IMG/VR virus record: IMGVR_UViG_3300023235_000008
Span: 166,060 to 230,059 of that record
Strand: one strand, 5' to 3'
Length of the DNA: 64,000 bases
Positions within the stretch are counted from its first letter, which is position 1. Each line of letters starts with the position of its first letter. Positions 23,297 through 64,000 of the stretch are shown in pieces. Position numbers and translations under genes: made by a program. Below the pieces are notes generated by a model that was not told where the DNA came from, ran no database searches, and saw nothing but the letters and a program-made list of their open reading frames with translations.

Positions 23297-23383
23297 ATGG
23301 AAATAGCAATCGGATCGTTATTAATCGCAGCAGTCGTGGTAATCGGACTGGCAATGTTTCTTTTCTTTAAATCATCTTTTTAA
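23297..23383 (+). CDS. 28-aa single-TM peptide
   Basis: AAGGA RBS; MEIAIGSLLIAAVVVIGLAMFLFFKSSF. Confidence 0.5.
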   Translation: MEIAIGSLLIAAVVVIGLAMFLFFKSSF

Positions 23384-23468
23384 TATACGCCGGGAATATA
23401 ATATAATGTCAAAACTAAGCTAGCCATGGAAACTTGCGCATCCATGGTAGAATTAATCGCTTACTACT

Positions 23469-23546
23469 GGATACGAGCCAACTATTGGTTTGTTGGGGCG
23501 GCCTTTTAACCCGTGTCTATTCTCGGTTCGATTCCGAGCGTATCCT
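23469..23546 (+). tRNA. trnK: tRNA-Lys(TTT), CCA not encoded
   Basis: GGATACG/CGTATCC; CT TTT AA. Confidence 0.8.
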
Positions 23547-23547
23547 C

Positions 23548-23627
23548 GTCTGTCAATATATAGTTACCTCCACGCGGTGACGGATGGAAAAGTTCGATAT
23601 AATATCGAACCTTACTAAATACTATAT
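23548..23627 (+). ncRNA. HDV-like (theta-type) self-cleaving ribozyme 3' of tRNA-Lys
   Basis: P1 GTCTGTC/GACGGAT (G1.U), P2 ATATAGT/ACTATAT, P3 ACC/GGT, L3 TCCACGC, P1.1 GG, P4 hairpin, J4/2 CTAA. Confidence 0.8.
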
Positions 23628-23631
23628 GAAA

Positions 23632-23703
23632 TACACAGTAGCTCAGAGGCAGAGCAGCAGATTGTTAATCCGTAGGTCGTGAGTTCGAGTCCCGCCGCCC
23701 CGT
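23632..23703 (+). pseudogene. tRNA-Asn(GTT) pseudogene (acceptor strands not complementary)
   Basis: D, anticodon and T arms canonical; TACACAG versus CGCCCCG. Confidence 0.6.
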
Positions 23704-23749
23704 TCTCCAGATTATGTTGTCGAGTGGGATTTTGATCCCATTTTTATAT

Positions 23750-23826
23750 AGGGATGTAGTTCAATCCGGTAGAATAGGTGGTTCCAACCCACCCGATGCG
23801 AGTTCAAATCTGCGCCGTCCCTGCCA
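23750..23826 (+). tRNA. trnW: tRNA-Trp(CCA)
   Basis: AGGGATG/CGTCCCT-G-CCA; one extra base in the T-stem. Confidence 0.85.
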
Positions 23827-24090
23827 TTCTCCAATCAGGAAATAAATATTCGAATTTCTTGATTCTTTTGCAGGTAAACGTGTTTTTGAACCTGCCAAAA
23901 ATTAATGTGGCTGACACATAGTATTCCAAAGTTGCCTAAACTCTTCTTTATTTGTAAATGCGGTATCATATGGATGATATAGAAATTCGCAGAATCGCAT
24001 CACATTGCTGTTGTATGGAATATCGAATTATATGGGTTCCGCATCTACTAGTGGTGCATAGTAATTTTTTTTGCATATTATATTTATTCA

Positions 24091-24168
24091 TCTGGGTTGG
24101 CTGATAGGAAAAGCGGCGTCTTGATAAGGCGTGTCATTACATTGGTTCGAATCCAATACCCAGAACCA
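24091..24168 (+). tRNA. trnI: tRNA-Ile(GAT)
   Basis: TCTGGGT/ACCCAGA-A-CCA. Confidence 0.9.
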
Positions 24169-24218
24169 AAATTCGGTATCGCCAACCAATAAATATACAG
24201 TTGATAAGGATTAACATA

Positions 24219-24290
24219 ATGGCTACTTACATAGGGTTAGGTATTATTGGATTAGCTTTTATATGGTTGATTCATACGATACATAAATAA
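24219..24290 (+). CDS. 23-aa single-TM peptide
   Basis: TAAGGA RBS; MATYIGLGIIGLAFIWLIHTIHK. Confidence 0.45.
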   Translation: MATYIGLGIIGLAFIWLIHTIHK

Positions 24291-24297
24291 AGAATAC

Positions 24298-24382
24298 GGA
24301 GGATACCGAGGTTGGCTCCTCAAACGGTCTTGAAAACCGTGGCACCGCAAGGTTGATAGTTCGATGCTATTATCCTCCGCCA
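24298..24382 (+). tRNA. trnS: tRNA-Ser(TGA)
   Basis: GGAGGAT/ATCCTCC-G-CCA; long variable arm. Confidence 0.9.
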
Positions 24383-24399
24383 TTAATGGAATTTGTAAA

Positions 24400-24588
24400 A
24401 TGATTTTTATACCCACTGATAATGTATACAATCGCATTGGCAATACATTCTTTACAACGATTGAAGAAGCGAAAGCGTGTGAACACAAATGCGTATGTGT
24501 ATCAAATGTAGAAGCGATTGATAGAACATTGCGATTTTACAAAAAGATGGGCAACGCAATTATTGCTTGTGATGTTAAAAAAGTTTAA
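24400..24588 (+). CDS. Hypothetical protein
   Basis: ORF after tRNA-Ser. Confidence 0.45.
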   Translation: MIFIPTDNVYNRIGNTFFTTIEEAKACEHKCVCVSNVEAIDRTLRFYKKMGNAIIACDVKKV

Positions 24589-24596
24589 AATACCTG

Positions 24597-24624
24597 TTGA
24601 CATATCCGTTGGATAGTGTATATT
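24597..24624 (+). promoter_or_regulatory. sigma70 early promoter
   Basis: TTGACA-16-TATATT. Confidence 0.65.
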
Positions 24625-24661
24625 CACATTATCAGTTGAACGCAAACAGGAGATTTTGCAA

Positions 24662-25315
24662 ATGAATATGTTTCAAAAAGCACTTGACGAAGCAGTTGTC
24701 GCACCGAAAGCCGCCAAGTCAAAAAAGCCGAGCAAGCCAGAGATTAACGTTGAAGGTATTGCAGTATTCGCAACCGTTGATGCAGTTATCAAAGGGTTGA
24801 CGGGCATTAAGTCCTCACTTGATGGCGAAATCAAAGCAGAAATCGTTGAGAATGCAGTAGCAACCCGTTCCGCAGAAAGCATTACCGGCATCGGCAATGA
24901 CGAAGATGGTGAGGCTATCGCAAGCGCAAACTTACAGTTACGCAAGCGTGTAGCAACTTCCGCACTTAGCGAAACAGAAGTAGCAATGCTTGCCGCTAAC
25001 GGTGTCAGCACACAGGAAGTCGGCGTTGATAGTCAAATCATTATCAACCCAAAATACAAGAACAACGAAAAGTTGCTGACTAAAATTAGCAAAGCACTTG
25101 AAAAAGTGGCTGGTATGCCAGAAGACTTCATTGTTGCCACACCAGAGTCGAAGAAGACTGTTACTACCGAGAACAGCATCAAAGACGCATTGGCGGTTGA
25201 AGATAAAGAAGTGGTTGCACAGTTGTTGGCAATCGTTGCCACCCCGGCAATCAAAGCAACACTGAACGATCCCGATTTGGCAAAAGCACTTGATCGCCTA
25301 AAAGACCTAATCTAA
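24662..25315 (+). CDS. Early hypothetical protein (highly-expressed codon usage)
   Basis: CAGGAG RBS; own promoter and terminator. Confidence 0.75.
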   Translation: MNMFQKALDEAVVAPKAAKSKKPSKPEINVEGIAVFATVDAVIKGLTGIKSSLDGEIKAEIVENAVATRSAESITGIGNDEDGEAIASANLQLRKRVATSALSETEVAMLAANGVSTQEVGVDSQIIINPKYKNNEKLLTKISKALEKVAGMPEDFIVATPESKKTVTTENSIKDALAVEDKEVVAQLLAIVATPAIKATLNDPDLAKALDRLKDLI

Positions 25316-25320
25316 TCCAA

Positions 25321-25348
25321 GCGGGGGTGAAAGCCCCCGTCATTTAGT
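25321..25348 (+). terminator. GC-rich hairpin terminator
   Basis: GCGGGGG-TGAAAG-CCCCCGT. Confidence 0.6.
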
Positions 25349-25350
25349 TG

Positions 25351-25379
25351 TTGACATCGTATAACATATAGTCTACTAT
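25351..25379 (+). promoter_or_regulatory. sigma70 early promoter
   Basis: TTGACA-17-TACTAT. Confidence 0.65.
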
Positions 25380-25417
25380 CTATTTGTAAGTTGATGAACA
25401 CATTAGGAGAGATTCAG

Positions 25418-25600
25418 ATGTCTACCATTTATGACCAAGCTATTCGTGAAGAAATCAAAGCCAATGCACCTTGCTGCCGCAATGGCATCAAACGATTTGG
25501 TGAAGCTAACGCAACAGGTCGTTCCGATGACATTGTATATTGCAGTTGCCCTAAAGGCGTTACAGAAGCCAATAAAATGCCAGCGTGGATGAACAAATGA
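25418..25600 (+). CDS. Small Cys-containing early protein
   Basis: AGGAG RBS. Confidence 0.6.
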   Translation: MSTIYDQAIREEIKANAPCCRNGIKRFGEANATGRSDDIVYCSCPKGVTEANKMPAWMNK

Positions 25601-25827
25601 ACGTTAGTTTCGAAACAACGATTTTGGGCGGGTTGCCGGTTTATGTTCAAGGCAATGTAGCGCCACCAGAACCTGATGTTGGCATCTTTCATTATTATGT
25701 TTATGATTATGAAATCTTCTGGGCAAGTGGTAAAAAACTGCGGAACATTCCAAACTCAATGTATGAGCGTATGACGGAAGACGAGATTGATGATCTGAAA
25801 GAAGAGATTTTAACTTGGGAACCGTAA
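25597..25827 (+). CDS. Hypothetical early protein
   Basis: ATGA overlap. Confidence 0.6.
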   Translation: MNVSFETTILGGLPVYVQGNVAPPEPDVGIFHYYVYDYEIFWASGKKLRNIPNSMYERMTEDEIDDLKEEILTWEP

Positions 25828-25834
25828 ATAGGGT

Positions 25835-25862
25835 TTGACATAATCGCAAAATCTGCTATACT
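25835..25862 (+). promoter_or_regulatory. sigma70 early promoter
   Basis: TTGACA-16-TATACT. Confidence 0.65.
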
Positions 25863-25888
25863 TCAAATATCAGAAACAGGAGATTAAA

Positions 25889-26110
25889 ATGGCTGCAATG
25901 AAAAACAAGATGATGGAAGTTCAAGACGAAGCACGTGAAGCGTTTGACAATGATACCGGTCTTGAAGCTGGTGTTCAATACAAAGGCACCATGTTTGAAG
26001 AAGTTTTTATCGATGCTTTCATTGAACGCCAAAACGAATACATCGCATACCTTGAACAGACTGCCACCATGAATGCCGCAAACGCTGGTTACGAAAATGG
26101 CGGCTGGTAA
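25889..26110 (+). CDS. Hypothetical early protein
   Basis: CAGGAG RBS. Confidence 0.7.
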   Translation: MAAMKNKMMEVQDEAREAFDNDTGLEAGVQYKGTMFEEVFIDAFIERQNEYIAYLEQTATMNAANAGYENGGW

Positions 26111-26324
26111 ATACGATATCACCTTCATCAAGGATGGCGTATCCGATGCGAACAATAACGGTGAACGATTTGATTTGTTCACCGTTCAGTTTAATGGCAA
26201 GCCCATTATGCAACGTGTTCCACATCATTTCGCTGTTTGGGCAGTTGCCGCAATGCGTGAGTTCGATCCACGGGATAATCACGATGCCTATCGCAAAGTG
26301 CAATCAGAGTGTCCATATGATTAG
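26097..26324 (+). CDS. Hypothetical protein
   Basis: Coupled ORF MAAGKYDITF. Confidence 0.55.
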   Translation: MAAGKYDITFIKDGVSDANNNGERFDLFTVQFNGKPIMQRVPHHFAVWAVAAMREFDPRDNHDAYRKVQSECPYD

Positions 26325-26577
26325 AATGATTAAACGAACGATTAAAGGCTGTGGATATGTTCCCGGATATGGAACGCATCCCGGCACCCCCATTATTTGG
26401 TATTTGACGTTCCTTGGCTTTAGTATTAATCTTGTCAACGGGACATTAATGATGGCAATCGTTAGCGCATCCTTAATGCTTATTATTTTTGGCATTCCTT
26501 ATCTATGGAGTGCGCACGAAAGAGCAGTAGATGGCGAAAAAGATTTCATCAGGGGATTGACAAAAGAATACAAGTAA
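26317..26577 (+). CDS. Membrane protein
   Basis: Hydrophobic segments. Confidence 0.55.
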   Translation: MIRMIKRTIKGCGYVPGYGTHPGTPIIWYLTFLGFSINLVNGTLMMAIVSASLMLIIFGIPYLWSAHERAVDGEKDFIRGLTKEYK

Positions 26578-26585
26578 GGTAGTAT
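26557..26585 (+). promoter_or_regulatory. sigma70 promoter (leaderless transcript)
   Basis: TTGACA-17-TAGTAT; ATG 7 nt downstream. Confidence 0.6.
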
Positions 26586-26591
26586 CTTATT

Positions 26592-27245
26592 ATGAAATAT
26601 GAAACATTCAATTACTGCTTTCCCGGTCGCCCACGTAAAGCGATTGCCCCAGCATTCCTAAACTTTCACGAAAAGCGTGGATGGGTAGGTCAATACAAAA
26701 AGAATGGAACGTGTAACGTTTTGTTTGTATCGCCTGATAAAGAAGTCACGGCTATGACACGACATAACGATACCCACAAACTTTGGACACCCACAGAAGC
26801 TTCTACTGGACTACTCCGCACAGTACCCGGCAATGGCTGGTGGGTGTTTAATGCCGAACTACTACACAGTAAATCACAGGCTGGACCGACCGATACCAAC
26901 TATCTATTCGATGTTCAAGTCGCCGATGGTGAAGTATTACTAGACAAAACATTTGCTGAACGTATTAAGATTATGGAAGACCTATTCTTGAAAGAGGATT
27001 CCGTCGAAGAATATAGCCATTACGTGGTAGGTGAGCGTGTATGGCTTGCTAAGACCATCACAGAGGGGTTTAAAGACAAATGGGACGAAGCAGATAGAGT
27101 TGCAAAAACACTCGATACTTCGCCTACCGATGAAGGATTGGTGTTGAAAAATCCAAAGGCAGTTTTGAAGCCACCGTTTTCAGCAGATTCAAATGCGGCA
27201 TGGCAAGTCAAATGTCGGGTGGCACACACAAACTATGCATTCTGA
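26592..27245 (+). CDS. Stand-alone ATP-dependent ligase/capping-enzyme nucleotidyltransferase domain
   Basis: QYKKNG (motif I), NAELL, YLFDV, EGLVLK, QVKCR; no OB domain. Confidence 0.75.
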   Translation: MKYETFNYCFPGRPRKAIAPAFLNFHEKRGWVGQYKKNGTCNVLFVSPDKEVTAMTRHNDTHKLWTPTEASTGLLRTVPGNGWWVFNAELLHSKSQAGPTDTNYLFDVQVADGEVLLDKTFAERIKIMEDLFLKEDSVEEYSHYVVGERVWLAKTITEGFKDKWDEADRVAKTLDTSPTDEGLVLKNPKAVLKPPFSADSNAAWQVKCRVAHTNYAF

Positions 27246-27459
27246 TAAAAAAGAGTTTTGGGACGCATTAAAGTATCCATCTGAAAAAGGATGCTTTAAC
27301 TGTAAACATAGGGTAGGAACGTCAGTTGAAAATACGTGTTGGCGCTGGTTGTCAGCGGCACCCGAAGCACGGTGCAGTATTACTGAAAAGCGGGGTGGCA
27401 CATCTCGGCTGTATCCATTTTGGGAATGGGATGAAGGATTGAAATGTGACATATTTTAG
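27235..27459 (+). CDS. Cys-rich small protein, paralog of 11799-11975
   Basis: EFWDAL..CFNC..WEWD. Confidence 0.55.
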   Translation: MHSDKKEFWDALKYPSEKGCFNCKHRVGTSVENTCWRWLSAAPEARCSITEKRGGTSRLYPFWEWDEGLKCDIF

Positions 27460-27488
27460 TTGACATCCGCATTCCGCCATGGTATAAT
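27460..27488 (+). promoter_or_regulatory. sigma70 promoter
   Basis: Perfect TTGACA-17-TATAAT. Confidence 0.75.
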
Positions 27489-27498
27489 AAATACTGTA

Positions 27499-27756
27499 AT
27501 GAAAGATATAAAAGAAGCACGGATTTGCCGTGAACAAGAGTTTTATGCTAAGTGTGGCGAACTCTTAGGATTGGAACATAAATATGTTGTTCCGTATAAA
27601 AGAAAAACACGTTGGAACCAACGCAATCCCGGTAACGGTAGATACAAAGGTTTCGGCGTAATAAGATATTTTAACGAAGCGAATATACACGTTATGTGTC
27701 GAAAGGGTTCAAAAACCTTTACCAATGTCGATGCAGTATATGAATGGCTTCAGTGA
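27499..27756 (+). CDS. Hypothetical protein
   Basis: RWNQRNPGNGRY.GFG. Confidence 0.6.
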   Translation: MKDIKEARICREQEFYAKCGELLGLEHKYVVPYKRKTRWNQRNPGNGRYKGFGVIRYFNEANIHVMCRKGSKTFTNVDAVYEWLQ

Positions 27757-27923
27757 GCGAGTGTGGTGAAATTGGTAAACACGCCAGATTTATGAGAGTC
27801 TCCGTTATAGGCTCCAATCTACAAGTTAGATTGTTTGGGGAACCGAGAAGGCTAAACCTTCAAAGTTCAAATCAGGTTCTGGTGCCGAAAGGTTTGGAGG
27901 TTCAAGTCCTCTCACTCGTACCA
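27757..27923 (+). tRNA. trnL: tRNA-Leu(TAG) with an 82-nt structured insert in the anticodon (27793-27874)
   Basis: Removing the insert restores CCAGA TT TAG GT TCTGG; the rest is a perfect Leu cloverleaf with A73-CCA. Confidence 0.85.
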
Positions 27924-27929
27924 AAATAA

Positions 27930-28005
27930 CGTAGGGTGGAGCAGTGGTCAGCTCGTGAGTCTCATAAACTCAAGGTCGGGGGTTCGAATCCCCCCCCTGC
28001 AACCA
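27930..28005 (+). tRNA. trnfM: Initiator tRNA-fMet(CAT)
   Basis: C1.A72 mismatch; CT CAT AA; CCA. Confidence 0.8.
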
Positions 28006-28048
28006 AAATATACAACGATAAATACTATTATCAAAAAGGAGAAAAGCA

Positions 28049-28240
28049 ATGATGATCGTAGGTTATCGTTCAAACGTAAACGCCGCAGAGGGCGTAAGAG
28101 CAGTAGTTAAACACACAGGTAAGCCAGTCGGCGAGGCACGTAAACTAATCGATTCTGCAATCGGTGGACAATCAGTTTTATTCGATTCAGATTGGGTATT
28201 ACGTGAAGACCTCGAAGACAATGGATTTATCATAGACTAA
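28049..28240 (+). CDS. Small protein, weak L7/L12 CTD-like helix motif
   Basis: AAGGAG RBS; VRAVVKHTGKPVGEARKLID. Confidence 0.6.
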   Translation: MMIVGYRSNVNAAEGVRAVVKHTGKPVGEARKLIDSAIGGQSVLFDSDWVLREDLEDNGFIID

Positions 28241-28245
28241 AAAAT

Positions 28246-28320
28246 GCGGATATAGCTCAGAGGCAGAGCAGAAGGTTTCCAACCTTCGTGTCGGGATTTC
28301 GAAATTCCCTATCCGCTCCA
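28246..28320 (+). tRNA. trnG: tRNA-Gly(TCC)
   Basis: GCGGATA/TATCCGC-T-CCA. Confidence 0.9.
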
Positions 28321-28426
28321 ACAAAGCAAAAGCGCTTCACGTTCAATAGTGATGCTCCTTATTTTGATTAAGTTCAAGCCTTCGGGTCATAGGGGTTATA
28401 TACTGGCTAAAGTTGAACATAGTTTC

Positions 28427-28502
28427 GGGGTATTAGCTCATCGGGGAGAGCACGACGTTAGCACGGTCGAGGTGGTAGGTTCGAGTCCTTGTTGGCCCAC
28501 CA
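28427..28502 (+). tRNA. Degenerate tRNA-Ala-like gene, anticodon AGC
   Basis: TT AGC AC loop; mispaired acceptor and T stems; CCA. Confidence 0.55.
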
Positions 28503-28508
28503 ATATAT

Positions 28509-28585
28509 AGTTGCGTAGCATAACTGGCGAATGCCGACTCCTCATAAGAGTTTTTATTCTGGTTCGAATCCAGACGTGACTACCA
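28509..28585 (+). tRNA. trnI: tRNA-Ile2/Met(CAT)
   Basis: AGTTGCG/CGTGACT-A-CCA; CT CAT AA. Confidence 0.8.
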
Positions 28586-28623
28586 AAATAAAAGGCGCAG
28601 GAACACGTTCCATAAATATATGT

Positions 28624-29321
28624 ATGAAAAGTATGTTTGAAGAAAACCCCGTTTATCGGGATGGATGGGAATATGATGATAATATCAAAGCCAATAAAGT
28701 AGTATATGCTATTGGATGCAGTTGGATACATTATAGTTGGTTCACTCGGGTACACGCTCTAAAATATCCAGACACCCTTCTTATCAATAGGTCATTCGGC
28801 GGTCATGGAAATAGTATGATTATAGACACGGTAAAACGTGAATATGATCTAATGCAAAAGTTTGATGATATATATTTTATAGTTTGTTTCTCCGAAGTAG
28901 GTAGAAATATCAAAGACTTTTCATATCAAAATCCAAAAAATTACAACGGTGTTCAAGAATATGAAAAAGCAATACTATACAATCAGATGGAATGCATTGA
29001 TCAGTTTCTCGGCAATGAACAAAGGTTTATAACAACCAGTTTCGTCAGTAATCCATATAATAATAATAAGCGTATTATTGACTTCTGTGAAAAGACATAT
29101 GATCAACCATGCGAAAGTTATACAGCTGCACCGGTGCATTCGAATACCTCAAAGATAGAAATAAGGTGTTCGATTTTGATTTGAATACATTAAGCAACGA
29201 CTTAGAGGATTGTATTAAATATATCGATTGGATGAATAGCCACAAACACATAGAAAATAATCACGCATTTGGATTCACGCCATATGAAAGTTTTATAGAT
29301 TATTTTTATCATGATAAATAA
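28624..29321 (+). pseudogene. SGNH-hydrolase-like gene split by a frameshift near 29115-29120
   Basis: AIGCSW and NRSFGGHGN blocks; continues in the frame of ORF 29109-29321. Confidence 0.5.
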
Positions 29322-29413
29322 TAATACACCTTGAACGGACCCGTAATGTTGGATGGGCCGCGCCCCTTGAGGTTTTCTAAGGCTCAATCGCCAACACGAA
29401 AGAGTTACAAAAT

Positions 29414-29512
29414 GCCCCTATAGCTGAGTGGTTTAGCAAGGGTTTTGTCAAGTACATCCGAGGGTGTATTTGAAAAACCCTAGACCGGAGTTCGATTCTT
29501 CGTGGGGGCACC
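29414..29512 (+). tRNA. trnT: tRNA-Thr(TGT) with a 25-nt hairpin insert (29449-29473)
   Basis: AGGGT TT TGT [CAAGTACATC-CGAG-GGTGTATTTG-A] AA ACCCT; GCCCCTA/TGGGGGC-A-CCA. Confidence 0.85.
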
Positions 29513-29527
29513 ATTCCTAAAATATTA

Positions 29528-29596
29528 GGGGCTGCTGTATGGGACAGACTCTGCACTTGCACTGCGGATGGTGGGGATCGTTACCCCATAGCTCCA
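29528..29596 (+). tRNA. trnA: tRNA-Ala(TGC), CCA not encoded
   Basis: G3.U70 pair, A73, CT TGC AC. Confidence 0.8.
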
Positions 29597-29664
29597 GATT
29601 GATAATATTGACTACCTCCACGTGGTATCAATCGGAAACTACAGAAATGTAGGCTAAATGTCAA
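29597..29664 (+). ncRNA. HDV-like (theta-type) ribozyme starting right after the tRNA-Ala discriminator
   Basis: P1 GATTGAT/ATCAATC, P2 TTGAC/GTCAA, P3 ACC/GGT, L3 TCCACGT, GG, P4 CTACA-GAAA-TGTAG, J4/2 GCTAA. Confidence 0.85.
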
Positions 29665-29674
29665 AAAGAATAAA

Positions 29675-29830
29675 GGGTCTTTAGCTCAGTTGGTAGAGCA
29701 TCTCGCTTATGTGAGACTTCCTATAGTCTCCGGTCTATTGTTAGACCGTCATTGGTATACTGCGAAGGGAAATCTTCAAAGTTAATGAACATCGAGAATG
29801 TCGGCGGTTCAAACCCGTCAAGACCCACCA
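29675..29830 (+). tRNA. trnV: tRNA-Val(TAC) with an 80-nt structured insert in the anticodon (29710-29789)
   Basis: Removing the insert restores TCTCG CT TAC AT CGAGA; GGGTCTT/AAGACCC-A-CCA. Confidence 0.85.
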
Positions 29831-29896
29831 TTTTAGAGGTATATGGTTAAAGTCCATATTTAAAGCGACGGTCAGTTCTCGCCTCTACTATAATAT

Positions 29897-29985
29897 GGAT
29901 AGTTGGCTGAGTTGGCCGAAAGCGCTCGATTGCTAATTGAGTGAACCGCAAGGTTCCGTGGGTTCGAATCCCACACTATCCGCCA
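29897..29985 (+). tRNA. trnS: tRNA-Ser(GCT)
   Basis: GGATAGT/ACTATCC-G-CCA; long variable arm. Confidence 0.9.
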
Positions 29986-29991
29986 ATTGTA

Positions 29992-30020
29992 TTGACATTC
30001 GTTGTCAATTTTGATATACT
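29992..30020 (+). promoter_or_regulatory. sigma70 promoter
   Basis: TTGACA-17-TATACT. Confidence 0.65.
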
Positions 30021-30044
30021 TAATTAAACATGGATATTTAATAA

Positions 30045-31175
30045 ATGATCATAGACGATGTGCCACGTGGATATACTGTCAACAATAAACTATTTTTCAA
30101 CCGCCATTTAGCTCACATTGAGCAAATGACGAATGGAGGGCTACTTGAGTTTAATATGTTTGATGACGCTTTCAGCAAATATAATTGGAAAATAGACCCT
30201 ACATTATCATTTGAGGAATTGATAGATATCCGAGCACACCAAATCAGAGAAACCAATGATGTGGTTGTGTTATGGTTTAGTGGTGGTACAGATAGTCTCA
30301 CGATGTATAATGCATTTATTCGCAACAATTTACACATTGATGAAATCATTGTTAGGTATTGGCCGATAGCTGGTCATTTTGGTATCGACAAATCAATTAT
30401 CGACTGGCTTTATGAACATCATCCTGACAAAAAAACTACTATAACGACGATTGACCAAACAGATAAGACTGTTCTATCATCCAATTTATACACAGATGAA
30501 TGGACATTATTGAATATGGGATTTGCTAAACATTTGAACGCTGCTGTAGTTTGGGGAACAGACGCCCTTAGTAAAAAATATGAAAACAGGAAATGGGTAC
30601 AAGTACATGGTTTCGAAAAACCACACTTGGTATACCGTAATGAAAAATTCTCTGCTTGGCATTTGGACCTTCCTTATCAATCAACTTTAGGTCACGAAAA
30701 TATGGAATACTTTTTCATAAGTCCTGAATTACCAGAACTACATATAAAGCAGTGCCATCTGCTAAAGAATCATTTAGTAGATAACCTATCGCATACATTA
30801 CATGAGGATTTTAGGTCAGAAAAACTATTTGAAACTACTGACCAGTCATCGTATATGAACTTATCAGTTCATGGGTGTGGCAGACACGGTGAAATACATC
30901 ATAAAATATGTGTTAGTGAGAAATCACTAATAAGGTCTAAAAAAGTTATATTTTCAAAGACAGAAAATTACAATGATTTGAAATTCACTGGATACCAATC
31001 TATACTTCACGCCAGCGCCAATAATATTGATAATATGAAGCATTGGTACAATGGCAGACTTGAGCTTATCAAATCCCCTGTGATGAAATATATGCTGGAT
31101 AGAAACCTAGTGACAAATAAAGACGACCCATTCAGTTTCGTCGGGATGTATTCCAAACAGTACGATCTAGAATGA
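30045..31175 (+). CDS. PP-loop (adenine nucleotide alpha-hydrolase-like) protein
   Basis: VVLWFSGGTDS; YFFISPELPELHIKQCH. Confidence 0.7.
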   Translation: MIIDDVPRGYTVNNKLFFNRHLAHIEQMTNGGLLEFNMFDDAFSKYNWKIDPTLSFEELIDIRAHQIRETNDVVVLWFSGGTDSLTMYNAFIRNNLHIDEIIVRYWPIAGHFGIDKSIIDWLYEHHPDKKTTITTIDQTDKTVLSSNLYTDEWTLLNMGFAKHLNAAVVWGTDALSKKYENRKWVQVHGFEKPHLVYRNEKFSAWHLDLPYQSTLGHENMEYFFISPELPELHIKQCHLLKNHLVDNLSHTLHEDFRSEKLFETTDQSSYMNLSVHGCGRHGEIHHKICVSEKSLIRSKKVIFSKTENYNDLKFTGYQSILHASANNIDNMKHWYNGRLELIKSPVMKYMLDRNLVTNKDDPFSFVGMYSKQYDLE

Positions 31176-31270
31176 TATTATCATTATTGGCTATTATAAG
31201 TGGATTGGTTTCTGGTATTTTTATCGGATATTTGAATGGATGGGCATCTTGTCCATCCATTCATAAATAA
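31172..31270 (+). CDS. 32-aa TM peptide
   Basis: ATGA overlap; hydrophobic. Confidence 0.4.
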   Translation: MILSLLAIISGLVSGIFIGYLNGWASCPSIHK

Positions 31271-31367
31271 ATGATGGACGCAATTTATAACTTTCTTGCC
31301 ACGGCTATCATTGTTGTATTGACACCGCTTATCGTATACTCTATAATAAGCATTACATTTTACATTT

Positions 31368-31443
31368 CTTCCCGTGGTGAAACTGGATATCACACTAGTC
31401 TTCTAAACTTGTATTTCGAGTTCGAGTCTCGACGGGAAGACCA
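31368..31443 (+). tRNA. trnR: tRNA-Arg(TCT)
   Basis: CTTCCCG/CGGGAAG-A-CCA; CT TCT AA. Confidence 0.85.
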
Positions 31444-57893: not shown

Positions 57894-58784
57894 ATGAGCA
57901 AGTTTGAAAAATTAATTGAATACGTTGTGAACGAAGACATGGAAAAAGCCCGTGCGCTTTTCCACGATCTATGCGTAGAAAAATCCCGTGACATTTATGA
58001 GAATCTTCTCGATGAAGAAGACCTTGATGAAGCTGAAGAAGCTGACGAAGAAGTTACTGAATCAGATGATGAAGACGAAGATGATAAAGAAGAAGTAGAA
58101 GAATCTTTTATGGACGAAGATTCTGACAATCTTCCTGTTGACCAATTCATTGATGATATCGAAGCTGATGAAGCTGGTATGTCAATGGAAGGCGAAGACG
58201 ATTTCGGCGATGACGAAGCAACATTCGGCGATGACGAAATGGGCGGCGAAGATGATATTGAAGATCGTATCGTAGACGTTGAAGACGCACTTGACGAACT
58301 AGAAGCAAAATTTAACGAGATTGTTGATGGTGGCGAATATGGCGACGACGAAGGCGACGATATGGGAATGGAATTCGGCGACGATGAAGACGGTATGGGC
58401 GACGAAGATTTCGGTGACGAAGAAAGTGGCGAAATGGATTTTGATTCTGAAGAAGATGATGATGAAATGGAAGAAACATTTGTTCGTGAATACACAGAAA
58501 AAGTTGACACACCTTCTAATAGTGCTCGTGAAGTTGGTACAGGCAAAGGCATCACTGTTAATAACAAAGATGTTGTAGCTAAAAAGCGTGAAAAAGGTTC
58601 AATCGACATTGGACGTGGTAGCAAGACGGAAGGTTCTAAGCCATCAGTAGGTAAATATGCTGACGGAATGGACCCACGTGCTGTTGGCAAGAAAAATGGC
58701 GACGGTCCAAAAACCGCTGCACCAGCAACAAAAAGCGAAGACCCCGGCAAAGGCAAGGGTCCAGTAGCTAAGAGTCACAAGTAA
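57894..58784 (+). CDS. Acidic prohead core protein (gp67-like)
   Basis: Extremely D/E-rich; between portal and protease. Confidence 0.7.
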   Translation: MSKFEKLIEYVVNEDMEKARALFHDLCVEKSRDIYENLLDEEDLDEAEEADEEVTESDDEDEDDKEEVEESFMDEDSDNLPVDQFIDDIEADEAGMSMEGEDDFGDDEATFGDDEMGGEDDIEDRIVDVEDALDELEAKFNEIVDGGEYGDDEGDDMGMEFGDDEDGMGDEDFGDEESGEMDFDSEEDDDEMEETFVREYTEKVDTPSNSAREVGTGKGITVNNKDVVAKKREKGSIDIGRGSKTEGSKPSVGKYADGMDPRAVGKKNGDGPKTAAPATKSEDPGKGKGPVAKSHK

Positions 58785-58814
58785 AAGACTCCTAACGGAG
58801 AGGAAAAATATAGA

Positions 58815-59450
58815 ATGGCTTCTTATTTGAGAGAAAACCTTACCTTCAAACAAGCGCAGATCGTCGTTGAAACTGCGAATGAAGGTAAGGAACTCTTTAT
58901 GAAAGGTATATGTATTCAAGGCGATCAACTGAACGCTAATAAACGTGTATACCCGACTAACGAGATTTCCGGTGCTGTAGTACAGATCACCGAAAGATTA
59001 AAGCAAGGTGAATCAGTTCTTGGCGAAGTAGACCATCCTGATGACCTGCAAGTTAACCTAGACCGAGTGTCCCACATGATTGAATCAATGTGGATGGAAG
59101 GCAACGATGGTTACGGTAAACTAAAAATTATTCCTACTCCAATGGGCAAGCTTGTCCAAACAATGTTGGAGTCAGGGGTTAAATTGGGCGTTTCATCCAG
59201 AGGTTCTGGAAACGTTAACGAAAGCGACGGAAAAGTTTCTGACTTCGAAATCGTAACCGTTGATGTTGTTGCCCAACCAAGCGCACCAGATGCATATCCA
59301 ACAGCTATCTACGAAGGGCTAATGAATATGCGAGGTGGACACAGAGTTCTGGAAATCGCCAAAGCTACCGGCGAAGATCAAAAAGTCCAGAAATATCTAA
59401 AAGAAGGCGTTCTGCGCCTTATCAAAGACCTAAAACTAGGAGACAAATAA
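58815..59450 (+). CDS. gp21: Prohead protease
   Basis: GEVDHP, VSH, LGVSSRGSG, D.V..PSAP.AY. Confidence 0.9.
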   Translation: MASYLRENLTFKQAQIVVETANEGKELFMKGICIQGDQLNANKRVYPTNEISGAVVQITERLKQGESVLGEVDHPDDLQVNLDRVSHMIESMWMEGNDGYGKLKIIPTPMGKLVQTMLESGVKLGVSSRGSGNVNESDGKVSDFEIVTVDVVAQPSAPDAYPTAIYEGLMNMRGGHRVLEIAKATGEDQKVQKYLKEGVLRLIKDLKLGDK

Positions 59451-60545
59451 ATGTTTGAGGCTCTAAAACCATTACTAGAAAGTGATATCGTCAATGAAGA
59501 AACTCGCCAAGCAATTCAAGAAGCTTGGGAACAAAAGGTTGGTGAAATTACTGAGCAAAATAAAGCGGAACTCCGTGAAGAATTTGCTCAAAAGTATCAG
59601 CACGATAAGTCTGTAATGGTTGAAGCTCTTGACACAATGGTAACTGAAAGTCTTAACGATGAATTAAAACAAATCGTTAAAGAAAAGAAGGCTCTATCCG
59701 AAGACCGTGTACGTTTCGCCAGTAAAATGACGGAATCTGCAAAGCGTTTTGACCAGTTCATGGTTTCTAAACTAGCTGAAGAAATTAAAGAACTACGTTC
59801 AGACCGAAAGGTTCAAGTGGAAGCACTCGCTAAATTCGAAGACTTTATGGTTCAAGCACTAGCTGAAGAAATTGAAGAATTCCAAGTTGATAAAAAAGAC
59901 CTAGCTGAAACAAAAGTTAAACTAGTTTCAGAAGCTAAGTCAAAAATGAAATCAATGCAAAAAGAATTCATCAAGCGTTCAGCGAAATTGGTTGAAACCG
60001 CAGTTTCCAAAAATCTTACACGTGAATTATCACAGTTGAAAGAAGATATCCAAGCTTCACGCAAGAACGATTTCGGTCGCCGCTTGTTCGAAGCCTTTGC
60101 TACCGAATTCGGTGCATCGCATCTTAATACAAATGTGGAAATGAAAAAGCTCGAAAAGAAACTAGCAGAAAAAGAAGCAATGATCAGTGAATCAACTGAA
60201 AAAGCTTCAAAAACTGCTCGCCTACTAGAAAGCAAAGATCGTGAACTACGTTTAACACAAGATCGTATCGAACGTAGTAAGGTTTTGTCAGAACTTTTAC
60301 AACCATTAAATCGAGACAAAGCAAATGCTATGAAAAGCCTACTTGAGTCAGTTGACACAGGTAAACTTAGAACAGCATTCGATAAATATCTACCAGCCCT
60401 ACTTAACGAAACACGTAAACCTAAAGCTAAAACGCTTAACGAAAGTTCACAAGTTCGAGAAGTAACCGGGGATAAAAAACAAAAAGCGCCAGAAGCAGAC
60501 GTTGTTGAATTAGACAGCATCCGTAAACTGGCAGGCATTAACTAA
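59451..60545 (+). CDS. gp22: Prohead scaffold protein
   Basis: Coiled coil between gp21 and gp23. Confidence 0.85.
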   Translation: MFEALKPLLESDIVNEETRQAIQEAWEQKVGEITEQNKAELREEFAQKYQHDKSVMVEALDTMVTESLNDELKQIVKEKKALSEDRVRFASKMTESAKRFDQFMVSKLAEEIKELRSDRKVQVEALAKFEDFMVQALAEEIEEFQVDKKDLAETKVKLVSEAKSKMKSMQKEFIKRSAKLVETAVSKNLTRELSQLKEDIQASRKNDFGRRLFEAFATEFGASHLNTNVEMKKLEKKLAEKEAMISESTEKASKTARLLESKDRELRLTQDRIERSKVLSELLQPLNRDKANAMKSLLESVDTGKLRTAFDKYLPALLNETRKPKAKTLNESSQVREVTGDKKQKAPEADVVELDSIRKLAGIN

Positions 60546-60558
60546 CAGGAGACAAAAA

Positions 60559-61752
60559 ATGTCACAGCCACTATTAGAAAGCCGTTGGAACGAGACAAAA
60601 GGCACGTTGCTTGAAGGTCTTGACGGAACAGCACGCAAGAATATGTCAATGATTCTTGAAAATACAAAAAAGCAGCTTCTTAACGAAACTGCAACAGTGG
60701 GCGGAACAGCCCATGGTAACATCGCAACACTAAACCGTGTGATCCTTCCGGTCATTCGTCGTGTGATGCCAACCGTTATCGCTAACGAACTTGTAGGCGT
60801 TCAGCCAATGCAAGGTCCAGTAGCACAAATTCACACGCTACGTGTACGTTATGCTGACACAGTTACTTCAACTGGTTCAACAGGCGCAACAGCTGGTGAA
60901 GAAGCACTATCACCATTCAAAATTGCAACCGCTTATTCTGGTGCAGATACGACTACAGATGCGAACAACGCTGGACGTGCAGCTAATACTGCTACTCTAG
61001 AAGGTGATCCGGGTCAGCGTATGTCTATCCAAATCATGAAGCAGCCTGTTGAAGCTAAAACTCGTAAGCTTGCAGCACGTTGGACTTTTGAAGCAGCTCA
61101 AGACGCAGATGCAATGCATGGTATCGATATCGAAGCAGAAGTAATGGCAGCACTTGCTCAAGAAATTACTTCAGAAATCGATCAAGAAATCATTTCTTCG
61201 CTTCGTGCACTAGCAGCAACAGAATACACATATAACCAAGCGGCAGTGTCCGGTACAGCAACTTATGTTGGTGACGAACACGCAGCTCTTGCAGTTCTTA
61301 TTAACCGTATGGCTAACAAGATCGGTCAGCGCACACGTCGTGGTCTAGGTAACTGGGCAGTCGTTTCCCCAGAAATGCTTACAGTTCTTCAAAGCGCAAG
61401 CACATCAGCTTTCGCTCGTACAACTGAAGGTACTTTCGAAGGTCCAACTAACCAGAAATTCGTTGGTACGCTTAACAGCACAATGAAAATCTACGTAGAC
61501 ACATATGCAGCAGATACTACACCAGTTCTTGTTGGATATAAAGGTTCTTCTGAAGCAGATGCAGCAGCATTCTATTGCCCGTATATTCCTCTTATGAGTT
61601 CTGGTACAGTTCTAGACCCAAGCACATTCGAACCAGTAGTTAGCTTTATGACAAGATACGGATATGTGGAATTAACGAACTCTTCCAGTAGCTTTGGTAA
61701 TGCTGGCGATTATTTGGGCGAAATTGCCGTAAGTAATATTTCGTTTAGCTAA
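60559..61752 (+). CDS. gp23: Major capsid protein
   Basis: VGVQPMQGP, A.TRKL.ARWTFE.AQD, FYCPYIPL, TRYG. Confidence 0.95.
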   Translation: MSQPLLESRWNETKGTLLEGLDGTARKNMSMILENTKKQLLNETATVGGTAHGNIATLNRVILPVIRRVMPTVIANELVGVQPMQGPVAQIHTLRVRYADTVTSTGSTGATAGEEALSPFKIATAYSGADTTTDANNAGRAANTATLEGDPGQRMSIQIMKQPVEAKTRKLAARWTFEAAQDADAMHGIDIEAEVMAALAQEITSEIDQEIISSLRALAATEYTYNQAAVSGTATYVGDEHAALAVLINRMANKIGQRTRRGLGNWAVVSPEMLTVLQSASTSAFARTTEGTFEGPTNQKFVGTLNSTMKIYVDTYAADTTPVLVGYKGSSEADAAAFYCPYIPLMSSGTVLDPSTFEPVVSFMTRYGYVELTNSSSSFGNAGDYLGEIAVSNISFS

Positions 61753-61804
61753 GGCTATACGCAATAAAGTTACGCAGTTTTACTTAGATAAGACACAAAA
61801 GATT

Positions 61805-61834
61805 AGGGAGAGCCTTCGGGTTCTCCCTTTTTTT
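61805..61834 (+). terminator. Intrinsic terminator after gp23
   Basis: AGGGAGAGCC-TTCG-GGTTCTCCC followed by a T7 run. Confidence 0.85.
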
Positions 61835-61895
61835 ATATAGATTTTTATATCCACCTGCGTTATAATGATAAATAAGTATATAACAAAGGAATATA

Positions 61896-62687
61896 ATGAA
61901 ACATTTTATCTATAAGACAACACATACAAACGGCAAATACTACATTGGTAGACATTCAACAAACAATATAGAAGACGGCTACTTAGGATCAGGTAAATGG
62001 GTCAGGGGCATCATTGATAAGTCTTCTTTATCCCGTGAAGTAATTCAGGAATACGATACCTTTGAAGACCTCATAGACGCAGAAGAGCAGTTTCTTATAG
62101 AACACATCCATAATCCCCAATGTATGAATATGACTGCACAATCTATCGGTTTCGTCACTGGTGGCAACAACCCTATGAAGGACCCTGATATAGCATCTAA
62201 AATATCAGGAGATAATCATTATTCAAGAACTAATCCCGAAAAAGTATCTCGTGGCGACAAACACTGGATGAATACCAATCCAGAAGCACGAGATACTTTC
62301 GTTGATAATCACCCTATGAAAACAGATGATAACAGGCAAAGGCAATCTGTGCGTAGAACGCAACGAAACTATGATAATAATCCTTCTGTGAAAAGTGCCA
62401 AAGAAGGTAAACATCATTGGCAGAATGGTAAGTCCCCGAATGCTGGTGGTAAGTTGAATAAAAAGTTGATTGAAGAAGGTCGGCATAACTTCCAAGGACC
62501 TGAGCATAATCGCCGCATGATTGAAGAAGGTAAAAATCCATGGGTGGGTGCTACACAAAATGAAAAGATGTTATCTACTGGAACTCATCCATCACAAACA
62601 AGATTAGTGTGTGAGCATTGTGGTTTAGAAACTGCTAAGGGTATGTACGCACGTTGGCACGGCGATAACTGTAAGACAAAAACATAA
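61896..62687 (+). mobile_element. GIY-YIG homing endonuclease (Seg-like)
   Basis: FIYKT..YYIGRH..DGYLGSG; NUMOD-like repeats; C-terminal CEHC..HGDNC. Confidence 0.8.
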
Positions 62688-62691
62688 ACGA

Positions 62692-62720
62692 TTGACAATC
62701 CTTAACCTATAGTGTATGTT
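62692..62720 (+). promoter_or_regulatory. sigma70 promoter (leaderless) of the repeat-gene array
   Basis: TTGACA-17-TATGTT; ATG at 62727. Confidence 0.6.
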
Positions 62721-62726
62721 ATTTAA

Positions 62727-63008
62727 ATGATACAGAACATTTATCCAGATGGAATGCATACCGATGCTGCAAATGGCAACAAACAATGGTTCTCTAATGG
62801 CAAACGACATAGAGAAGATGGCCCTGCCCTTGAATATGCAAATGGCAACAAATATTGGTACTTTAATGGCAAACTACATAGAGAAGATGGCCCTGCTATT
62901 GAATTTACAAATGGCACCAAAGTTTGGTACTTAAATGGCAACCTAGTAAACATGGGAGATGTTATCACTGATCCAAAAGATCAATTCTGGTGGAATATGA
63001 AATCATGA
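62727..63008 (+). CDS. HRxDGPA (MORN-like) repeat protein A, 2 repeats
   Basis: WxxNGxxHREDGPA twice; C-cap VITDPKDQFWW. Confidence 0.8.
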   Translation: MIQNIYPDGMHTDAANGNKQWFSNGKRHREDGPALEYANGNKYWYFNGKLHREDGPAIEFTNGTKVWYLNGNLVNMGDVITDPKDQFWWNMKS

Positions 63009-63409
63009 GAAAAGATGGAATGCATACCAATGAATTTGGTAACAAAGAATGGTATTTGAATGGCGAACGTCATAGAGAAGATGGTCCTGCTATTGAATAT
63101 GCATATGGCGAGAATTTTTGGTACTTGAATGGCAACCTTCATAGAACTGATGGCCCTGCCATTGAAAATTCAAATGGCGACAAATTATGGTACTTGAATG
63201 GTGAACGACATAGAACTGATGGTCCTGCCGTTGAATTTGCAGATGGCGACAAATTTTGGTACTTGAATGGTGATCTTCACCGAGAAGACGGACCAGCTAT
63301 TGAAAGCGCAAATGGCGACAAATTTTGGTACTTTAATGGCAAAGAAGTAAGAATGCAAGATGTTATCACCGATCCAAAAGAACAATTTTGGTGGAATATG
63401 AAATCATGA
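63005..63409 (+). CDS. HRxDGPA repeat protein B, 4 repeats
   Basis: ATGA overlap; same caps. Confidence 0.8.
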   Translation: MRKDGMHTNEFGNKEWYLNGERHREDGPAIEYAYGENFWYLNGNLHRTDGPAIENSNGDKLWYLNGERHRTDGPAVEFADGDKFWYLNGDLHREDGPAIESANGDKFWYFNGKEVRMQDVITDPKEQFWWNMKS

Positions 63410-63600
63410 GAAATGGAATGCATACCGATGCATATGGCACCAAACAATGGTACTTTAATGGTGAACGACATAGAGAAGATGGTCCTGCGAGTGAATGGGA
63501 TGATGGCACCAAACAATGGTACTTTAATGGCAACCTAGTAAACATGGAAGATGTTATCACCGATCCAAAAGAACAGTTCTGGTGGAAGTTAAAATCATGA
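63406..63600 (+). CDS. HRxDGPA repeat protein C, 1 repeat
   Basis: ATGA overlap; same caps. Confidence 0.75.
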   Translation: MRNGMHTDAYGTKQWYFNGERHREDGPASEWDDGTKQWYFNGNLVNMEDVITDPKEQFWWKLKS

Positions 63601-63932
63601 AAACAGATGGAATGCATACCAATGCATATGGCACCAAACATTGGTTCTTTAATGGCAAAATACATAGAGAAGATGGCCCTGCTATTGAATGGGATGATGG
63701 TAGCAAATTTTGGTACTTGAATGACAAACGACATCGAGAAGATGGCCCTGCTGTTGAATTTGCAAATGGCACCAAACATTGGTTCTTGAATGATAAACTT
63801 CATAGAACTGATGGCCCTGCTATTGAAGATGCAAATGGCACCAAAGTTTGGTACTTAAATGGCAACCTAGTAAACATGGGAGATGTTATCACTGATCCAA
63901 AAGATCAATTCTGGTGGAAGTTAATATCATGA
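63597..63932 (+). CDS. HRxDGPA repeat protein D, 3 repeats
   Basis: ATGA overlap; same caps. Confidence 0.8.
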   Translation: MKTDGMHTNAYGTKHWFFNGKIHREDGPAIEWDDGSKFWYLNDKRHREDGPAVEFANGTKHWFLNDKLHRTDGPAIEDANGTKVWYLNGNLVNMGDVITDPKDQFWWKLIS

Positions 63933-64000
63933 ATGTAGATGGAATGCATACCAATGGAAATGGCACCACCCGTTGGTTCTTGAATGGCGAACGACATAGA
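63929..64000 (+). CDS. HRxDGPA repeat protein E (runs off the window)
   Basis: MNVDGMHTNGNGTTRWFLNGERHR. Confidence 0.75.
   Translation, partial: MNVDGMHTNGNGTTRWFLNGERHR

Follow-up and report, generated by a model that had tools for sequence, protein, structure and literature searches.

A ten-gene array of HRxDGPA-repeat proteins with a predicted MORN-like fold in a jumbo myovirus from a salt-lake metagenome

MORN proteins (MORN4, TbMORN1/TgMORN1, the junctophilins and RSP1/10) are built of repeats with a 23-residue period and a framework of glycines and aromatic residues, and their hairpins form a single-layer sheet. MORN4 binds a helix of Myo3a, junctophilin binds a peptide of CaV1.1, and the G-box of CPAP binds a STIL peptide on its sheet. 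The same period and framework, and by prediction the same kind of sheet, are found in the proteins encoded by a gene array at the end of a 64,000-nt stretch of phage DNA (positions 166,060 to 230,059 of IMG/VR record IMGVR_UViG_3300023235_000008; the whole stretch is called the window below). These proteins are referred to here as HRxDGPA proteins after the motif of their repeat unit. MORN4 has in common with them also its small size and the succession of ~4 repeats and a C-terminal helix. The repeat motifs are different (YxGxWxxGKxHGxG in MORN proteins versus GxKxWYxNGxxHRxDGPAxE in the phage), and, unlike MORN proteins, the phage HRxDGPA proteins are stand-alone mini-proteins encoded in coupled arrays.

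Several other described systems resemble the locus in part. The YwqK/MORN_2 antitoxins and the immunity loci of polymorphic toxins also contain tandem paralogs and employ a bacterial MORN-variant scaffold as a binder, a role that the array proteins would share; unlike these systems, the array misses the respective hidden Markov models, has no adjacent toxin gene and is a phage cassette with its own promoter. In Pfam DUF6745 (206 positions), a family of no known function, positions ~62–93 match one HRxDGPA unit, and many metagenomic relatives of the array proteins are labelled with this name; the array proteins themselves lie below its cut-off. Gene accordions and expanded families of large DNA viruses (poxvirus K3L; ankyrin/F-box and MORN families of giant viruses) have in common with the array a lineage-specific tandem expansion of repeat proteins of the host-interaction type, with near-identical neighbours, and giant viruses (Mimivirus R871, Megavirus, Klosneuvirinae) encode proteins with the same unit, some of them fused to RING or F-box-like N-termini. 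Unlike the accordions, the phage family is expanded at two levels (genes and 69-bp units), and no copy-number heterogeneity within the population was detected in assemblies. Phage morons share with the array their own promoter and terminators, the location between late genes and the patchy occurrence among relatives, but a moron is one gene, whereas here ten translationally coupled paralogs follow each other and the first of them is apparently leaderless. The CPAP/SAS-4 G-box (TCP10) and the central sheet of OspA give Z-scores of 6–7.8 in VIA-align; they show no sequence relationship to the HRxDGPA proteins and have other repeat lengths. The novelty of the locus lies in coupled arrays with variable unit number, since MORN-like repeats and viral multigene families are already known.

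Anatomy and expression signals of the array

The full array is formed by ten genes with 2/4/1/3/2/1/3/2/5/1 units and is ~2.85 kb long, of which the window covers the first 1.3 kb. A preliminary description, made from the letters of the window, had reported at least five genes joined by ATGA overlaps. The window contains g1–g4 in full and the beginning of g5, and ten genes are present once a second contig is joined to it (see the next section). Coordinates beyond 64,000 continue the window numbering.

62727-63008, plus strand: g1, 93 aa; N-cap, two HRxDGPA units, C-cap
63005-63409, plus strand: g2, 134 aa; four units; its ATG overlaps the g1 stop codon (ATGA)
63406-63600, plus strand: g3, 64 aa; one unit; ATGA overlap
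63597-63932, plus strand: g4, 111 aa; three units; ATGA overlap
63929-64192, plus strand: g5, 87 aa; two units; first 24 codons in the window
64189-64383: g6, one unit
64380-64712: g7, three units
64709-64975: g8, two units
64972-65442: g9, five units
65439-65570: g10, one unit; truncated, no C-cap

Every junction in the array is an ATGA overlap, and the reading frames are intact in all ten genes. The HRxDGPA unit is 23 residues (69 bp) long and stays in register over 37 copies with the motif GxKxWYxNGxxHRxDGPAxE. In g1–g4 the units are enclosed between an N-cap (M-x-x-DGMHT) and a C-cap (V-x-M-x-DVITDPK-x-QFWW plus four residues); the caps, the unit length and the 2/4/1/3 unit numbers are as the preliminary description had them. 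By reading of the sequences, the N-cap is a degenerate half unit (DGMHTD versus DGPAIE). The number of units is 1–5 in the genes of the array and 0–7 family-wide, and no recognisable catalytic domain was found in the array proteins. By prediction, the part behind the units is a conserved C-terminal helix with FWW at its end.

The residues G1, W5, H12, R13, D15, G16, P17 and A18 are invariant over the 37 family units of the genome. The highest entropy among these units is observed at positions 2, 4, 7, 21 and 22, in agreement with the earlier remark that variation is concentrated after GPAxE and around GxKxW. The variable positions are contiguous over the unit boundary (E-x-x-N-G-x-K-x-W). Positions 21–22 and 2–4 flank one N-G turn, so that the variable residues would make up one hairpin tip while HRxDGPA would form the opposite, invariant edge; this placement is deduced from the sequence in combination with the DSSP string of the g2 model described below.

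The signals in front of the array, and sites of the same type elsewhere in the window, are the following.

62692-62720, plus strand: sigma-70-type promoter-like site TTGACA-17-TATGTT, 10 of 12 matches, ending 6 nt before the g1 ATG
12698, 14244, 26557, 29992 and 62692 (window): leaderless-type promoter-ATG sites

The position of the promoter-like site at 62692-62720 implies that the g1 mRNA would be leaderless or nearly so. Inside the array neither a promoter-like site of comparable quality nor a terminator-like site on the coding strand was found, which together with the one promoter in front fits a single transcription unit. The genes after g1 are preceded only by a weak Shine-Dalgarno-like GGTGG located ~11 nt upstream and originating from two Trp codons of the C-cap. 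Termination-reinitiation is a known mode of translation at overlapping stop and start codons, and the weak Shine-Dalgarno sequences along with the ATGA overlaps make it the likely mode for these genes. The arrangement TTGACA-N16-18-TAnnnT-N4-9-ATG occurs 5 times in the window versus 0.46 times expected (0 of 100 shuffles reach 5). Record-wide, ~12 such promoter-ATG sites open real open reading frames (ORFs) of 48–401 aa with a spacing that is nearly always 6 nt (range 5–9). This suggests that leaderless first genes are a habit of the phage and that many of its mRNAs may be leaderless; such a systematic geometry is a separate point of interest for phage gene expression. The preliminary description had proposed one leaderless early promoter for the array. 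A single promoter-like site 6 nt before the ATG is indeed present and its geometry is recurrent, but "early" expression would follow only from the sigma-70-type consensus, that is, from the promoter type.

Assembly and evolution of the family

The array runs past the end of the window. In order to extend it, the metagenome contigs of the Joint Genome Institute (JGI) were scanned with a 37-nt g5-specific word, and the scan gave Ga0222634_1000043 (81,145 bp, locus L176), a second contig of the same metagenome. The first 127 bases of this contig are identical to the last 127 bases of the window, and the 127-mer is unique in the 230-kb record. Completing g5 by joining the record end to the record start was ruled out: the record start is not the continuation of the record end. 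In another assembly of the phage (L091) record position 1 is preceded by 163 nt of non-coding DNA rich in promoters, and the L091 record extends ~14 kb past the last family gene without a further match. In the IMG/VR contigs neither the native g5 junction nor a designed g5/g6 recombinant junction is present. As for the record start itself (L001:1-101; L091:2204-2366), it lies within a block of repeated promoter-like elements (TTGACA ... TCCATATATATGATACAATGGGC). Several assemblies end at the same base there, and the depth of Logan unitigs is ~3.5x (bases 1–94) and 2x (65–270) that of unique phage sequence.

It has to be considered that a short-read assembler might have produced a false array by collapsing or chaining similar repeats. 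The source contig terminates inside the array, the Logan unitigs are fragmented at the array and the unitig depths are uneven, which would be expected from such an artefact. Against it, the longest exact repeat between genes of the array is 99 bp, and the g4/g5 and g9/g10 junctions share ~105 bp (as read from a 105-nt unitig), both values being below the 127-bp overlap. The IMG/VR contigs L095 (7,081 bp) and L087 (9,134 bp), which originate from other samples, are 100% identical to the array through g1–g4, and L094 shows 0 mismatches in 2,417 bp when compared with g7–g10 and 1.2 kb beyond. Logan unitigs of four runs contain an exact 514–526-bp piece spanning g2 units 2–4 and g3. Identical independent assemblies and shared unitigs argue against an assembly artefact, a concern raised already in the preliminary description, and we regard this explanation as extremely improbable.

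In all four runs the exact g2–g3 unitig (window 63074-63587) is covered at ~0.72x the depth of the unique flank, and the break in the assembly coincides with a genome-unique 127-mer (window 63874-64000). Either observation could reflect a minority structural variant.

Comparison of the genes with each other reveals how the family has changed. Genes g5, g6, g7 and g8 align almost base for base, the differences being clean deletions of one or two 69-bp units. The 3'-ends of the array genes carry exact tracts of 72–99 bp (99 bp in g5/g7, 88 bp in g1/g4, 85 bp in g4/g9, and 75 bp in both g5/g6 and g6/g7). The g1/g4 tract corresponds to the ~86-bp identity noticed earlier at the ends of these two genes (then called A and D), and at ~80% background identity its length of 88 bp is far beyond chance. 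Exact 3' tracts of 66–80 bp are found in the second cluster of family genes, and two family genes outside the array contain internal exact duplications of units (69–78 bp). These data show that genes have been duplicated in tandem, that whole 69-bp units have been gained and lost, and that the 3' cap has undergone gene conversion.

A different array is seen in a relative of the phage (L089/L084), whose capsid protein is 93% identical and whose flanking DNA is ~80–83% identical. It occupies the same locus, directly 3' of the capsid terminator, and consists of four genes with 2/0/2/2 units, different N-caps and GTGA overlaps. One more array, of 5/2/3/3 units, is present on contig L088. At L089:4660-4788 (minus strand) there is a 42-aa gene made of an N-cap and a C-cap with no full unit. 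No family genes were found in up to 10 kb on either side of the capsid gene in 80 IMG/VR phages with 74–78% identical capsid proteins.

Four contigs are 100% identical to the record start, and two contigs differ only by one single-nucleotide polymorphism and a 9-bp deletion, both in non-coding DNA. The preliminary description had pictured a library of genes shuffled like an accordion, and had named invariance beforehand as the outcome that would speak against a live one. All available assemblies of the phage proved to be identical over the family genes. The picture holds for the past of the family, given the duplications, the unit insertions and deletions, the conversion and the different array in the relative, but the sampled assemblies do not differ. 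The locus shows this evolutionary mode unusually clearly, with coupled genes, whole-unit indels, 3' conversion tracts and another array in a relative side by side. The suggested check for a reverse transcriptase came out negative: none (RVT_1) is encoded in the 230-kb record, which is ~65% complete, so that the enzyme that defines a diversity-generating retroelement is missing from it.

Selection on the repeat was estimated from nonsynonymous (dN) and synonymous (dS) rates, pooled by the Nei-Gojobori method over ~37 units. At 15 framework positions dN/dS is 0.08–0.14, which means that the genes are constrained coding genes and that the scaffold is under strong purifying selection. At positions 2, 4, 21 and 22 dN is ~0.85, versus a dS of 0.34 at the same sites and of 1.03 in the framework. 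Thus, the per-position analysis that had been called for confirms constraint on the framework, while the variable sites change at about the synonymous rate, which is no proof of diversifying selection.

Predicted fold, spread and function

The array proteins reached no family threshold in Pfam, NCBIfam, PHROG or PADLOC. Their best Pfam match is DUF6745 (PF20530) with 20.1–22.7 bits versus a 27-bit cut-off, and it covers 17–25 residues at profile positions ~63–88; Tcp10_C gives a weak match. The AlphaFold2 model of g2, calculated with an alignment of 127 relatives, replaced a single-sequence model with a predicted local distance difference test score (pLDDT) of 54. The model has a pLDDT of 94.7 and a predicted template-modelling score (pTM) of 0.82 and consists of short strands and a C-terminal helix at 117–133. 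The structure prediction proposed in the preliminary description has thus yielded a sheet of hairpin repeats. A Foldseek search of the PDB and Swiss-Prot models returned only MORN proteins on top (expectation value E 5.6e-5 to 1e-3, probability 1.0, TM-score ~0.45), namely TbMORN1, MORN4/Myo3a, TgMORN1, junctophilins, radial-spoke proteins, the MORN domains of PIP5K, and SET7/9. In VIA-align, MORN4 scores alongside the non-MORN single-layer sheets of the CPAP G-box and OspA (Z 6–7.8, maximum 7.8). Matches to viral models are stronger (E down to 6.5e-17, TM-score up to 0.83), and all of them are uncharacterised; they belong to uncultured Caudovirales phages, Atu_ph07, Celeribacter phage P12053L, Mimivirus R871, Megavirus, Klosneuvirinae, Marseillevirus and Orpheovirus.

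The modelling supports assignment of the HRxDGPA proteins to the class of MORN-like hairpin-repeat folds, i.e. an elongated single-layer antiparallel beta-sheet; homology to MORN proteins is not proven. Of the resemblance to MORN and YwqK antitoxins stated earlier, the first part is supported by the predicted fold and by the best Foldseek matches, but membership of MORN_2/YwqK fails by sequence and no toxin gene is adjacent. The proteins were also considered as DNA mimics; this was rejected, since their isoelectric points of 4.8–6.9 versus a proteome median of 5.7 are not Ocr- or ArdA-like.

The repeat is widespread. An exhaustive HMMER search gave 26,916 representative clusters at E <= 1e-3, of which 1,653 remain at E <= 1e-30, with proteins of up to ~1,900 residues, and a word-indexed search for the unit gave at least 8,000 candidates. 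The best-matching Atlas clusters are ~94% viral among the members with a taxonomic record. Thus the unit is represented by ~27,000 clusters, the best-matching of them mostly viral, yet it has no curated repeat family or solved structure. In other proteins it is fused to RING fingers, F-box-like N-termini, a RepB primase C-domain, a dGTP diphosphohydrolase N-domain, S1, PcfJ or DUF7666, and such varied partners are the pattern of a general adaptor module. By tblastn, family members were found only in Celeribacter phage P12053L, Agrobacterium phage Atu_ph07 and one uncultured phage, all annotated as hypothetical.

Among bacteria and archaea (one genome per species), 247 stretches encode relatives, and 9 of the 79 loci examined have at least three adjacent family genes. 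In Janthinobacterium sp. RB2P8 (L103:2444-10327) and Duganella qianjiadongensis (L132:3499-10357) seven genes with 4-bp overlaps and 3–6 units share an N-cap (MKNGRYEE) and a helical basic C-cap that are particular to them. These arrays are located between a MobC/NikA-like gene and a putative relaxase, followed by a PADLOC candidate defence ATPase (PDC-S06, AAA_13). A contig of an Anaerolineales metagenome-assembled genome carries eleven such genes with 2–10 units and again with their own caps. This repeat class therefore occurs repeatedly, in mobile elements, as arrays with conserved caps, variable units and translational coupling. An argument that the Janthinobacterium and Duganella arrays belong to the anti-defence genes of a leading region was considered in view of their position between mobC and the relaxase gene. 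It was dropped because relaxosome genes lie in the lagging region (PMC11541004).

The reading that we favour, and which we judge about equally liable to be right or wrong, is that the array is a coupled cassette of MORN-like binders on one scaffold which act on host proteins in takeover of the host or in counter-defence. The cassette would be a moron-like accessory unit transcribed by the host RNA polymerase from its own sigma-70-type promoter, with the first gene leaderless and the nine later genes translated by termination-reinitiation at the ATGA overlaps. Free variation around one hairpin tip would give a graded set of proteins on the same scaffold which differ in length and surface. After infection these might bind host proteins stoichiometrically and sequester, block or retarget them, their role being host takeover or counter-defence. 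The binder role is suggested by the analogy with single-layer-sheet binders, by the fusion partners found elsewhere and by the restriction of the repeat to mobile elements.

A number of points weigh against this interpretation. Searches of the literature on DUF6745, on strings of the unit motif and on MORN in combination with phage found nothing relevant, and no binding partner, expression timing or phenotype of any family member was found there. The cassette is located among the structural genes instead of in a classical early region. The match to MORN_2 (PF07661) reaches 13.4–14.1 bits versus a cut-off of 29.6, there is no match to PF02493, no NCBIfam YwqK match appears at E <= 1, and no PDB chain was matched by sequence; structural Z-scores below 8 can reflect only a common arrangement. 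The variable sites were picked post hoc and their change is not above the framework dS, which is compatible with neutrality; diversifying selection is not demonstrated because the sites were chosen for their variability. No copy-number heterogeneity was found among the available assemblies of the phage, all of them consensus sequences that seem to represent a single population. The link to the second contig depends on one 127-bp overlap of k-mer length, and is as good as a de Bruijn adjacency but is not a proof.

Two alternatives appear unlikely to about the same degree. According to one of them, the paralogs are YwqK/MORN-variant antitoxins or immunity proteins, each directed against a different toxin (e.g. 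effectors of abortive infection or polymorphic toxins). MORN-variant proteins of the YwqK type carry the annotation antitoxin and tandem arrays of immunity genes do occur, and a MORN-like predicted fold, weak sub-threshold MORN_2 matches and tandem paralogs with variable surfaces would all suit such a poly-immunity array. The MORN_2 scores of 13–14 bits remain far from the 29.6-bit cut-off, however, NCBIfam YwqK is not matched, and neither the array nor the other clusters have a toxin-like gene beside them, their neighbours being the capsid, homing endonuclease, tail fibre, UvdE, cell-wall hydrolase and NMNAT-like genes. The other alternative is a largely neutral expansion driven by recombination, in which cap DNA and 69-bp units are prone to slippage and unequal crossing-over. 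The copies would then have little individual function, or the protein would be a membrane- or lipid-binding one of the MORN type, indifferent to the number of copies and units. Decayed copies (g10 without a C-cap, a 35-aa remnant, the fragment at C1:4955-5074 and an exonuclease-fused copy) and the near-synonymous rate of change at the variable sites are what this would predict. It does not explain the framework dN/dS of 0.08–0.14 over ~37 units, the frames and ATGA coupling intact in all ten genes, or the same architecture kept with different caps in unrelated mobile elements.

Still less probable, in our opinion, is that the products are virion-associated, i.e. head-decoration, internal (ejected) or fibre-associated proteins of variable length. 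The array is placed directly 3' of the capsid gene both in the phage and in its relative and is followed by a tail-fibre-like gene, and one VIA-align match is a phage baseplate chain (Z 6.9). But the array is preceded by a strong terminator and a sigma-70-type promoter of its own, the remaining members of the family are dispersed over regions of non-structural accessory genes, and related arrays occur in non-viral mobilisation modules. The lack of family genes in the capsid flanks (up to 10 kb) of the 80 phages with 74–78% identical capsids means that they are not part of a conserved virion module. In order of decreasing probability the rivals are thus poly-immunity and neutral expansion, approximately level, then virion association and then the assembly artefact.

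The interpretation as host-directed binders can be extended to the whole class, though only as a tentative and rather doubtful proposal. HRxDGPA arrays may be widespread, undescribed modular binder libraries of mobile elements (phages, giant viruses and mobilisable islands), with specificity arising from the number of units and from four to eight hairpin-tip residues per unit. New binders would come about by unit slippage, gene duplication and cap-guided conversion, and would serve to disarm or retarget host proteins. If so, the arrays would be the protein-level counterpart of designed repeat binders, maintained in the form of a coupled operon. If the proteins bind host factors, they would offer a large untapped source of anti-host and anti-defence specificities as well as a natural scaffold for protein engineering.

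The phage, the array neighbourhood and other family members

The window is the final 64 kb of one 230,059-bp contig (JGI metagenome contig Ga0222634_1000013), which IMG/VR classes as linear and for which CheckV gives a completeness of 65%. The public runs that contain the phage sequence are all labelled salt lake metagenome. The G+C content of the phage genome is 39.8%. The gene at 60559-61752 encodes a Gp23-type major capsid protein (Pfam, 4.4e-99), and its nearest named relatives, at ~62–65% identity, are found in the jumbo myoviruses Pseudomonas phage PA5oct, Sinorhizobium phage Phosso, Vibrio phage 2.275.O and large Escherichia phages. The element that hosts the array is a PA5oct/Rak2-like jumbo myovirus from a salt-lake metagenome. 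Megablast of the array region against GenBank phages gave no match, and an Rfam scan of 58000-64000 gave nothing above noise.

The array is placed between the major capsid gene, with its homing endonuclease insert, and a tail-fibre-like gene. On its 5' side the following features are found.

61805-61828, plus strand: intrinsic-terminator-like hairpin 3' of the capsid gene, 10-bp stem with 6 GC pairs, then TTTTTTT
61896-62687, plus strand: homing-endonuclease-like gene, 263 aa (PHROG 314 'homing endonuclease', E 9.8e-25)

The hairpin marks the upstream boundary of the late operon. The homing-endonuclease-like gene separates the capsid gene from the array and is counted as a neighbour, not as a member of the array; in the relative L089 it is missing from the capsid-array position. 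Its N-terminus looks GIY-YIG-like by eye. On the 3' side, on contig Ga0222634_1000043, the features come in this order.

First gene 3' of the array: 132-aa ORF
L176:2474-2503: terminator-like hairpin 3' of the 132-aa ORF
3' of this hairpin: glycosyltransferase-like gene
3' of the glycosyltransferase-like gene: tail-fibre-like gene, 823 aa
Beyond the tail-fibre-like gene, opposite strand: NUDIX gene

A profile of the paralogs gives 20 matches in 15 ORFs of the record, so that with g6–g10 the phage has ~20 family genes. Those outside the array are located as follows.

C1:268-1117: pair of genes with seven and two units
C1:2934-4322: four coupled family genes (the second cluster)
C1:6512-6841: single family gene
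C1:10767-11030: single family gene
C1:139036-139802, minus strand: pair of family genes

The neighbours of these clusters are accessory genes (UvdE, a cell-wall hydrolase, DUF6267 and an NMNAT-like cytidylyltransferase). Smaller pieces of the family are also present. At the record start a 35-aa ORF without units (L001:168-275) consists of the C-cap only and stands behind its own leaderless promoter, and an orphan single-unit fragment is located at C1:4955-5074 (= L001:4955-5074). At L002:2040-2597 (minus strand; = G000:C1:139039-139596) 2–3 HRxDGPA units are fused in frame to a C-terminal piece of ~120 aa. Judged by Atlas features, the piece is similar to the C-terminal portion of a DEDD 3'-5' exonuclease (Rv2179c-like / RNase_T), and it has no Pfam or PHROG match. 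The fusion may have arisen when a family copy disrupted a gene or recombined with it.

Both in the phage (L001:9438-11030) and in Atu_ph07 (L175; 421736-423032) a family member is located just 3' of an NMNAT-like nucleotidyltransferase gene, and this gene order may represent conserved local synteny. The next leaderless promoter 3' of the second family cluster, which drives the cell-wall hydrolase gene, has the stop codon of the last gene of that cluster within its -35 box (TCTTGACA; L001:4319-4354). Elsewhere in the window, 17 tRNA genes, all on the plus strand, are clustered at 19283-31443; they include three for tRNA-Met, two for tRNA-Gln, two for tRNA-Ala and one for tRNA-Trp.

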